In this document: positions 157 through 3,100 of the stretch, piece after piece
Layout of the letters: each line of letters begins with the position of its first letter
How positions within the stretch are numbered: position 1 is the first letter of the stretch
NCBI GenBank assembly: GCA_002269645.1
Contig: NIVC01000072.1
Span: 1 to 30,712, forward strand
From: Macrostomum lignano
Taxonomy: Eukaryota
Direction: 5' to 3'
Length of the DNA: 30,712 bases
Program-made: the position numbers and the translations under genes
Notes under the pieces: model-generated
What the model was told of the DNA's origin: nothing
Database searches by the model: none
What the model saw: the letters and a program-made list of their open reading frames with translations, nothing else

Positions 157-3100
157 GTAAGAATTTGCAACTTTTGCGATTCTAGTTAAAGTGCAGCTTG
201 TACTTCATAAACAAATAATGGCCGATCATTGTCTACGCCCGCAGCCGCGCGAACGAGGCTGCATGCGATTTCATTATTTGCAAAATGTGGAAACTGCATT
301 GAATTTTCTCACCTCACGCCGTGGTGTAAGTGACTACCGCGACCGAGTTTTTATAATAGTCTCTACTTGCTACTTAGTTCCTAAGTAGAAGTAGTATAAG
401 CACTTCTAGACAAAATTATTCTAAAAAATTCCAGATTCGCTTAGTAACATTCGCCCAGAAGATATAGTGGACGGAAATCCTAAACTGACGCTGGGTCTGC
501 TCTGGGTTATTATTCTGCACTATCAGGTGAGAGAAGTGTGTTTTTGTGAAATGCATGCGCCACGTTAATTCATTCGGCCGTTGGTGATGGCATGACACAG
601 TGGCGTAGCTAGGGGGTCAAGGACTGCTGCGGTGTTGCCTTTAATCGCTGGTAAAGTAATAGCCTTCCAGTTAGTAGCTGGTGCTGGCGCCCCTGGTGCT
701 GGCGCCCCTGGTGCTGGCGCCCCTGGTGCTGGCGCCCCTGGTGCTGGCGCCCCTGGTGCTGGCGCCCCTGGTGCTGGCGCCCCTGGTGCTGGCGCCCCTG
801 GTGCTGGCGCCCCTGGTGCTGGCGCCCCTGGTGCTGGCGCCCCTGGTGCTGGCGCCCCTGGTGCTGGCGCCCCTGGTGCTGGCGCCCTGTGCTGGCGCCC
901 TGGTGCTGGCGCCCCTGGTGCTGGCGCCCCTGGTGCTGGCGCCCTGGTGCTGGCGCCCCTGGTGCTGGCGCCCCTGGTGCTGGCGCCCCTGGTGCTGGCG
1001 CCCCTGGTGCTGGCGCCCCTGGTGCTGGCGCCCCTGGTGCTGGCGCCCCTGGTGCTGGCGCCCCTGGTGCTGGCGCCCTGGTGCTGGCGCCCCTGGTGCT
1101 GGCGCCCCTGGTGCTGGCGCCCCTGGTGCTGGCGCCCTGGTGCTGGCGCCCCTGGTGCTGGCGCTCCGCAGGGTGAATGATTGATCAAATCACTTTGCAG
1201 TTTGACAACGAATTTAAAAAATGAGCCATTGTAGTCTGGAATTCAAAATTTAGAGGGGTTTAAATTAAAGGTATAAAAAGTACTTTTTTAATTGCAGACA
1301 AGTATTTTATTGCTCACGCCCTGATAAGCATAGGCGCCTAAGATTAAACTTTAAATAATTTATGATCGCGGCATGCGATAGAGGGACATGTACATTCATT
1401 ATTAAACTTCAGACTGACCACAATAAATAGATAACACTCTGTACTTGATGCAACTAATAAAAATAAAAATAGAAGGAATATTGAAAGCCAGTCAGCTTAA
1501 AATCAGTAACCATTGTCCAACCCTTGTAATGTACATTACTGCGGTACATCAGTCTGTCTGTATTTGATCTGCGCATGATCTGCACACGCTATTCTTAGAT
1601 AGGGCCGCTAATTGGGCCTGTTTGTGGGGGGTGGCGTCAACAAGTCAGTTCGCCTAAATGAGTCAATTTGACTTTTTTGGCGGTCAGTGCGGTGGGTGGA
1701 AATGCAGTTATTATCAATCTCTCACTTATCTTAGCTCAGCTGGATCTTCTCTATTCAATATTTTGCCCGCATCGAGCAGAGGACACGGCAAGGCCTTGCG
1801 CAGTTCAGGACCCCCCCCCCCTTAAGCCACTAAGAATCCAACTGCTCTATCTCTGTTTCTCTTTAGTCCGAGATAGCTGCAGTGCAACGAGTCAGAAGGC
1901 AAAAAACACATTCTGACGCCCAGTTTAAGAAACTTTTTTTCACTCGTGAATTTAAGCGAAAGAGCAGCCTGTGGCTTGGCAGCACAGGCGATTTAGTATG
2001 GGCGCTAACGGCTGCAGGGCTTGCTGTAGCTTTTTTCACCTTCGCTATGAAGCGCTTTGAGAAATTGTTTTCTAGCAATAAGAAGCAGAAACAGCAGAAA
2101 ACTCAAAAGCAGAAAAAGGATAACGGAGAGGCAAAGCCTCATCACCAGCATCACGGCTGGCGGCCGTTTAATTGTTTCTCGCATAACCGACCTGTAAGTG
2201 CTTGCTCGTTTTCATTCACCAATACGTAAGACTTTACCCGAATTTTCGTTCAATTTGATAGAATACGTTATAAAGACACCTAGAAAAAAATGATTTTTTG
2301 AGCTAAATTGTGCTTGGTCTTGGCTATGACAAAACTAGATTCTTGTCTATGACCAATCTAGATTCTTGTCTATGACCTATCTAAATTCTTGTCTATGACC
2401 AATTTAGATTATTGTCTATGACCAATTTAGATCCTTGTCTATGACCAATCTAGATTCTTGTCTATGACCAATCTTGATTCTTGCCTATGACCAATCTTGA
2501 TTCTTGTCTATGACCAATCTTGATTCTTGTCTATGACCAATCTAGATTCTTGTCTATGACCTATCTAAATTCTTGTCTATGACCAATTTAGATTATTGTC
2601 TATGACCAATTTAGATCCTTGTCTATGACCAATCTAGATTCTTGTCTATGACCAATCTTGATTCTTGTCTATGACCAATCTTGATTCTTGTCTACGACCA
2701 ATCTTGATTCTTGTCTATGACCAATCTAGATTCTTGTCTATGACCAATCTCGATTCTCGTCTATGACTAATCTCGATTCTTGACTGTGACCAATCTCGAT
2801 TCTTGTCTATGACCTATCTCAATTCTTGTTTATGACTGATCTCGATTCTTGGTTTTGTGACCATTTTATATTCTTGCCTATGACCAATCTAGATTATTGT
2901 ATATTACAAATCTCGATTCTTGTCCATGACCAATCTAGATCCTTCCTTATGACCTATCTAGATTTTTTTCCATGACCAATCTAGATTCTTCCTTATGACC
3001 TATCTAGATTCTTGTCTATGACCTATCTAGATTCTTGTCTATGACCAATCTAGATTCTTCCTTATGACCAATCTAGATTCTTGTCTATGACCAATCTAGA

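Follow-up and report, generated by a model that had tools for sequence, protein, structure and literature searches.

Whether the intron between the CH1 and CH2 exons of a flatworm spectraplakin gene harbors the first exon of an isoform without CH1, and at which codon the product of such an exon would begin, is the question raised by a stretch of Macrostomum lignano DNA (contig NIVC01000072.1 of assembly GCA_002269645.1, positions 1 to 30,712; this whole stretch of 30,712 nucleotides is referred to as the window). The segment concerned, 1867-2193, lies inside the CH1-CH2 intron (527-5323). It is probably a real exon that is spliced to CH2, and it probably starts a shorter, membrane-targeted isoform that lacks CH1.

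The plus strand of the window carries a plectin/MACF1-type spectraplakin gene. The CH1 exons (66-156, 245-325, and 435-526) and CH2 exons (5324-5511, then from 6025) were spliced by hand, and the resulting tandem CH domain matches the Pfam CH family with E = 5e-36. The closest solved structures in the PDB to this actin-binding domain are those of plectin and MACF1 (E 1.7e-62 to 3.1e-62, of the order of 1e-62), in agreement with the first-pass annotation, which had taken the gene for a spectraplakin with an additional exon between CH1 and CH2. The tandem CH1-CH2 is followed by spectrin-type repeats and plectin repeats, as identified with Pfam, which is the arrangement of a spectraplakin. Three UniRef proteins of M. 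lignano, which is a free-living flatworm, correspond to the window: P0001 (A0A1I8GI37), P0002 (A0A1I8F5V4), and P0003 (A0A1I8GIW8), which are 100, 78, and 92% identical to it, respectively.

A candidate exon between CH1 and CH2

Both splice signals attributed to the segment are present. The acceptor gctctatctctgtttctctttag, also written ...tctctgtttctctttag, ends at 1866, and the donor at 2194 has the context CCT/GTAAGT. Pyrimidines make up 85% of positions -23 to -4 of this acceptor as compared with 45-70% in the five verified acceptors of the gene. The donor and the acceptor of the CH2 exon at 5324 are both in phase 0, as had been proposed, and the segment thus has the position and phase of an exon that could open a CH2-only isoform. 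The first-pass annotation described the splice-compatible frame from ATG 2047 only, where MKRFEK...NRP does run for 49 codons up to the donor, and overlooked that the same frame (SEIAAVQRV...) is open from the first base of the exon over all 109 codons, with the TAG of the acceptor itself as the upstream stop.

An opening of this length would seldom arise by chance. Under a local Markov model, the probability that 109 codons are open in a given frame is 0.008. Both strands of the 30.7-kb window (61 kb in total) were scanned for units in which a pyrimidine-rich AG is followed by at least 150 nt of open frame, in phase 0 at both ends, and by a GTRAGT donor; 1867-2193 was the sole unit returned, and it also carries the only phase-0 ORF (open reading frame) of at least 10 codons from an ATG to a GTRAG in intron 527-5323. 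The pattern is therefore unlikely to have arisen by chance. The stretch of 293 nt upstream of ATG 1998 is free of ATG, which is weak evidence (P = 0.10 under the same model, not significant), and no coding mini-exon able to feed the 1867 acceptor was found within 527-1866. A repeat or transposon copy was considered as the origin of the segment and is excluded within the window, where the exon region occurs once.

An exhaustive phmmer search of 1.84 billion representative proteins with the 109-residue exon peptide gave 0 matches at E <= 0.001, the known type-3 leaders of other spectraplakins included; in such a search, an isoform stays hidden if the representative of its cluster does not have the exon, and short leaders may be too diverged. 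Pfam has no match for the leader in either frame version, and Rfam has none in the window. A protein search with the exon joined to CH2 also gave no match, which is a weak negative as P0001, although 100% identical, was missed as well; the word-indexed search apparently lists only proteins of about the query length, and long isoform models could therefore be missed. No encoding contigs are on record for P0001, P0002, P0003, or the two window ORFs over the exon, and the MGANGC region had no match in an exact-pattern scan of metagenome contigs. None of the three M. lignano models contains the exon. They break, however, at the CH1-CH2 intron: P0003 ends with ...ILHYQV, P0001 and P0002 start with LSEV..., and P0001 begins with exactly the residues that open the CH2 exon at 5324 (LSEVLPDQ...). 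Judged by their accession series, all three entries look like partial gene models of an earlier assembly, and they neither support nor exclude the exon.

These results bear on the alternative that the segment is no exon at all but an intronic chance combination of a pyrimidine-rich AG, an open frame, and GTAAGT. We consider this somewhat unlikely. Several features fit it and weigh against an exon: the lack of homologues and of a Pfam domain, the absence from the public models, a leader that is largely of low complexity and rich in lysine and glutamine, and the circumstance that the segment was picked by eye in the first-pass annotation. Its GC content of 0.46 is intron-like, and the whole-codon log-likelihood ratio is about 0 overall, but the CH1 exons of the gene are similar in GC and codon scores; the ratio, which is dominated by stops and amino acid composition and is about 0 for genuine CH1 exons too, is uninformative. 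Chance would also have to account for the open frame, for the lack of any comparable unit in the 61 kb, and for synonymous codon use that is coding-like in the 3' half of the segment. The first exons of the CH2-only isoforms of fly and vertebrate spectraplakins lie in the CH1-CH2 intron, and the position of the segment counts against a chance combination as well. The coordinates of the candidate exon and its surroundings are given in Table 1.

Table 1. Features of the candidate exon and of the neighboring CH1 and CH2 exons, with synonymous-codon scores where these were determined.
Feature	Position	Strand	Codon score	Remarks
CH1 exon with one surplus base (C at ~84)	66..156	+		Relative to P0003 (KACKIR/DLFND); tblastn of P0003
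Last CH1 exon	435..526	+		Ends ...ILHYQ in phase 0; frameshifted as written; tblastn of P0003
Polypyrimidine tract and TAG acceptor	1843..1866	+		Candidate trans-splice or cis-splice site; 85% pyrimidines at -23..-4
Candidate exon	1867..2193	+		109 codons in 327 nt; both ends in phase 0; no stop in the splice-compatible frame
5' part of exon, splice-compatible frame	1867-1997		-0.01	Ambiguous
Hydrophobic segment, splice-compatible frame	1993..2049	+		Overlaps the MGANGC ORF; mean Kyte-Doolittle hydropathy 2.01 over 19 residues
16-residue hydrophobic part, splice-compatible frame	1999-2046		-0.29	Noncoding-like
MGANGC ORF and stop, +2 frame	1998..2060	+		A at -3, G at +4; Cys6/9/10; PS00008 pattern
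MGANGC 13-residue part, +2 frame	1998-2036		+0.24	Coding-like
T6 run	2031..2036	+		Loss of one T joins the MGANGC frame to TFAMKRFEK...
MKRFEK...NRP polybasic leader, splice-compatible frame	2047..2193	+	+0.08	49 codons; frame continues into CH2; coding-like
GTAAGT donor	2194..2199	+		Phase 0; matches the M. lignano donor motif GT[G/A]AG
First CH2 exon (LSEVLPDQ...HRF)	5324..5511	+		Splice partner; acceptor in phase 0

Possible reading frames and start codons of the candidate exon

Two overlapping frames compete for the 5' end of the protein. ATG 1998, for which the favorable context and the stop at 2058-2060 had been described correctly, opens an ORF of 20 codons in the +2 frame and, as written, ends there, whereas an ORF that begins at ATG 2047, or at an AUG supplied by a spliced leader, would be continuous into CH2. 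The peptide GANGCR that follows the first methionine fits the PROSITE PS00008 N-myristoylation pattern, G-{EDRKHPFYW}-x(2)-[STAGCN]-{P}, and Cys6, Cys9, and Cys10 are nearby. A lipid anchor on the leader is plausible but unproven, as judged from sequence. The proposal of a lipid-anchored, CH1-less start thus stands with respect to the exon features, the pattern, and the cysteines, but not with respect to the frame as written. The splice-compatible frame encodes across the same bases a hydrophobic segment of 19 residues (mean hydropathy 2.01) that directly precedes the polybasic stretch. Both of its flanks are basic (about +6 on the N-terminal side).

Synonymous-codon preference was scored against the gene's own exons in windows of 16 codons; the baselines are +0.09 (SD 0.15) for coding windows and -0.11 (SD 0.16) for stop-free intronic windows. 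By this measure the MGANGC part and the MKRFEK leader resemble coding sequence, the hydrophobic part resembles noncoding sequence, and the 5' part of the exon is ambiguous. In a recoding simulation in which the MGANGC peptide was held, the other frame was open and hydrophobic in 14% of recodings; when the hydrophobic peptide was held instead, a myristoylation pattern with at least two cysteines appeared in only 2.7%. Codon preference, Kozak context, and the simulation together favor MGANGC as the selected frame, whereas the end-to-end open frame favors initiation in a spliced leader or use of the exon as a cassette.

The two frames are separated by the T6 run at 2031-2036, and the earlier suggestion that they would fuse if this run were T5 or T8 is borne out. 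It is also made more credible by the state of the CH1 exons, in which a tblastn comparison with P0003 revealed two single-base indels in 264 nt of coding sequence. A surplus C at about 84 shifts DLFND... to the frame next to that of KACKIR, and the A-run at 446-447 is one A short, so that IRLV and NIRPED... are in different frames and the last CH1 exon, as written, reaches an in-frame TAG inside the highly conserved IRLVNIR motif (IRLVNIRPED). Either the assembly is in error at these indels, or the copy is a paralog in decay that has lost the ability to make CH1. The published M. lignano assemblies are PacBio-based and contain most regions in about three paralogous copies (PMC10733133). In either case, the T6 run as written is not reliable. 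Frameshifted stretches also distinguish P0001 and P0002 from the window. Residues ~357-380 of P0001 correspond to another frame of the same DNA at ~7090-7170 of the window, where the window agrees with P0002, so that two compensating indels must be present in the copy or assembly behind P0001. With frame-breaking indels in conserved exons, arguments about reading frames on this assembly require checks at the level of reads, and any assignment of a start codon to the exon is tentative on an assembly with such single-base errors.

Our tentative choice is a start at ATG 1998 with a miscalled or mutated T-run. We infer the steps of transcription, splicing, sequence correction, and lipidation as follows. 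Transcription from a promoter inside the CH1-CH2 intron would yield a pre-mRNA whose outron is lost at the 1867 acceptor, with spliced-leader trans-splicing as the most likely mechanism, and the GTAAGT donor at 2194 would join the exon to the CH2 exon at 5324. Translation would begin at ATG 1998, the true T-run at 2031-2036 being one T shorter than written because of an assembly error or a real lesion in a paralog. The product would lack CH1, as type-3 MACF1 and dystonin and C-type Shot do, and would carry a short membrane-targeting leader in which Gly2 may be myristoylated and Cys6, Cys9, and Cys10 palmitoylated, adjoining a polybasic patch.

An acceptor in TAG, where all five verified acceptors of the gene have CAG, weighs against this course of splicing, and four considerations tell against the choice of start. 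(i) As written, the acylation motif is not in the same ORF as the body of the protein. (ii) The specific one-base change required in the T-run has an a priori probability of about 3-7%, although this is no longer negligible. (iii) The 60 codons upstream of ATG 2047 are open in the splice-compatible frame (P = 0.069 by chance), which is unexplained if those bases are 5' untranslated region (UTR). (iv) The AUG of a spliced leader, if one is added at 1867, becomes an upstream AUG in a frame other than that of MGANGC.

The last two points lead to a reading in which the sequence is correct and the start codon is supplied in trans. In M. lignano, ~30% of the genes receive by trans-splicing one and the same 35-nt leader, CGGTCTCTTACTGCGAAGACTCAATTTATTGCATG, which ends in ...TTGCATG (PMC8629364), and translation of some flatworm mRNAs is reported to begin at the terminal AUG of the spliced leader (Cheng et al. 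2006, cited in PMC9851317 and PMC12582326). The strong acceptor, which would be superfluous for a plain first exon, suggests spliced-leader trans-splicing. The first-pass annotation had raised this for the case that the DNA came from a flatworm, which holds for M. lignano, but had overlooked that the leader's terminal ATG falls in the splice-compatible frame. With the frame open behind the acceptor from 1867 to 2193, trans-splicing at 1867 would place the leader AUG at the head of a continuous ORF into CH2 without any correction, and a leader of 110 residues with a transmembrane-like helix and a polybasic stretch would result, with MGANGC arising incidentally from another frame of GCT-rich DNA. 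The open frame, the hydropathy of the 19-residue segment, and the N-terminal transmembrane domain reported for dystonin a2 (PMC3352950) are in keeping with this. An in-frame leader AUG is nevertheless expected by chance in about one-third of trans-spliced mRNAs, the value for Schistosoma mansoni being 28% (PMC9851317). The acceptor sequence CTTTAG agrees with the trans-acceptor motif YTNCAG ([T/C]TNCAG) apart from position -3, which is T where C is favored; the motif is found at only 44% of known sites (PMC8629364). Moreover, the codon scores of the hydrophobic part and of 1867-1997 speak for noncoding and ambiguous sequence, respectively, the leader AUG would have a weak context (T at -3 and T at +4), and the rarity of a myristoylation pattern with cysteines in the simulation makes MGANGC a poor by-product. 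The basic flanks of the helix on both sides, taken with the positive-inside rule, would leave no topology that keeps the giant C-terminal body cytosolic. We therefore regard initiation at the leader AUG with a transmembrane-like leader as unlikely, and the dismissal of MGANGC as a by-product of base composition as equally so.

The CH2 exon may offer a second route to the same end. At its own acceptor at 5324 (cgcgcag/CTATCC), a spliced-leader AUG is likewise in frame (M-LSEVLPDQ...), and direct trans-splicing onto this exon is a possible second way to a CH1-less isoform. The start of P0001 at LSEV was not used as evidence of trans-splicing; P0001, like P0002, also ends at an exon boundary, and an annotation artifact is possible.

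A further possibility with a correct sequence is that translation of an alternative first exon begins at ATG 2047 (MKRFEK...), with ATG 1998 opening a regulatory upstream ORF of 20 codons that overlaps the main start. Such a start needs no correction, has G at -3, and opens an ORF that is coding-like and ends at the donor, and alternative 5' UTRs often contain upstream ORFs. The overlapping ORF at 1998, which has the stronger Kozak context, would, however, prevent most initiation at 2047. Coincidence would also have to explain the perfect myristoylation motif with its cysteines, the coding-like codons of this upstream ORF, and the 60 open codons. This leaves ATG 2047 only a slim chance of being the start.

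Finally, the length of 327 nt and phase 0 on both sides mean that the exon could serve as an in-frame cassette, cis-spliced between the CH1 exon end at 526 and CH2, which would insert 109 residues in the CH1-CH2 linker. The matching phases, the uninterrupted frame, the strong acceptor and donor, and the sharing of acceptors between cis- and trans-splicing in flatworms (PMC12582326) would all permit this. The closed CH1-CH2 domain would probably be broken up by a hydrophobic, polybasic stretch in its linker, the codon evidence for the 5' half of the exon is weak, and the annotated models P0001-P0003 show no such insert. We know of no cassette at this position in other spectraplakins. Use of the exon solely as a cassette appears very improbable. 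A combined arrangement, in which a giant CH1-less cytoskeletal linker with the 110-residue leader obtains its start codon in trans and the exon, if cis-spliced, may act as an in-frame cassette too, we rate as rather unlikely, a shade more so than leader-AUG initiation taken by itself.

Repeats in and around the gene

The CH1-CH2 intron contains tandem repeats. A 15-bp minisatellite, CTGGTGCTGGCGCCC, occupies 678-1164 in ~33 copies, with sporadic C4/C3 and missing-G variants that resemble consensus indel errors. A 23-bp array, TCTTGTCTATGACCAATCTAGAT, begins 120 bp past the candidate donor and extends over 2318-3364 in ~45 copies, and a (CT)n tract of ~180 units lies at 4208-4567. The break of the public gene models in this intron is plausibly explained by the (CT)n tract and the two arrays. 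Another 23-bp tandem array, TCACCTGTTCAAGATAGGGTTGA, is found farther downstream at 8100-8493 (~17 copies).

Two further repeats are coding. A 36-nt unit, present in ~10 copies at 14750-15121 and encoding QVDP(A/S)Q(S/P)GMSTQ, is located in ORF 14168-15895 and adjoins plectin-repeat-like sequence. A 33-nt unit is repeated ~190 times at 18541-25078 within the 3,038-codon spectraplakin ORF 16660-25776; this 6.5-kb coding block encodes ~2,000 residues of an 11-residue unit, a giant low-complexity insert that is unusual for this gene family, and its opposite strand contains a Cys-rich ORF of 1,669 codons as a by-product.

Comparison with known CH1-less isoforms

If the exon is used, production of a CH2-only spectraplakin from an internal start would extend from flies and vertebrates to flatworms, and if the MGANGC start is true, lipid anchoring of such isoforms would be either ancient or repeatedly evolved, which would argue for a specific cortical function. 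M. lignano is amenable to transgenics.

All spectraplakins make isoforms with CH1 and CH2, with CH2 only, or with neither through alternative promoters (bioRxiv 10.1101/122010). The first-pass annotation had drawn on the CH1-less isoforms of vertebrates and of fly Shot and on the myristoylation motif of BPAG1a3, and the literature confirms both: MACF1a3 lacks CH1, and BPAG1a3 (dystonin) has a conserved myristoylation motif and possible palmitoylation sites (PMC3352950; bioRxiv 10.1101/122010). The product proposed here would resemble dystonin/BPAG1 a3 and b3 and MACF1 a3 in being CH1-less and CH2-only, and BPAG1a3 in particular in that an MG start with a PS00008 match and three cysteines precedes a polybasic stretch. 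It differs from the vertebrate type-3 isoforms in three respects. In the phmmer search its leader had no similarity to a known one, its motif is out of frame as written, so that the resemblance depends on a one-base correction, and its exon has a strong acceptor, whereas vertebrates lack spliced-leader trans-splicing.

On this latter point the exon resembles the flatworm ORFs that begin with a spliced-leader AUG (slORFs), in that an in-frame opening sets in with the base that follows the acceptor, as in mRNAs that depend on the leader AUG, although this acceptor ends in TAG and thereby departs from the enriched YTNCAG. The hydrophobic segment of the splice-compatible frame, followed by basic residues, recalls the N terminus of dystonin a2 (BPAG1a2), for which an N-terminal transmembrane domain has been reported (PMC3352950) but disputed (bioRxiv 10.1101/122010). 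In dystonin a2, however, the segment is near the extreme N terminus and precedes a full CH1 and CH2, whereas in the candidate it would follow ~45 basic residues and precede CH2 only.

An invertebrate precedent is provided by the C-type isoforms of Drosophila Short stop, which arise from an alternative promoter and have CH2 only behind a lead sequence of their own; neither function nor lipidation is reported for the Shot lead sequences (bioRxiv 10.1101/122010), in contrast to the anchor proposed here. By position and phase, the candidate exon probably belongs to this CH2-only class.

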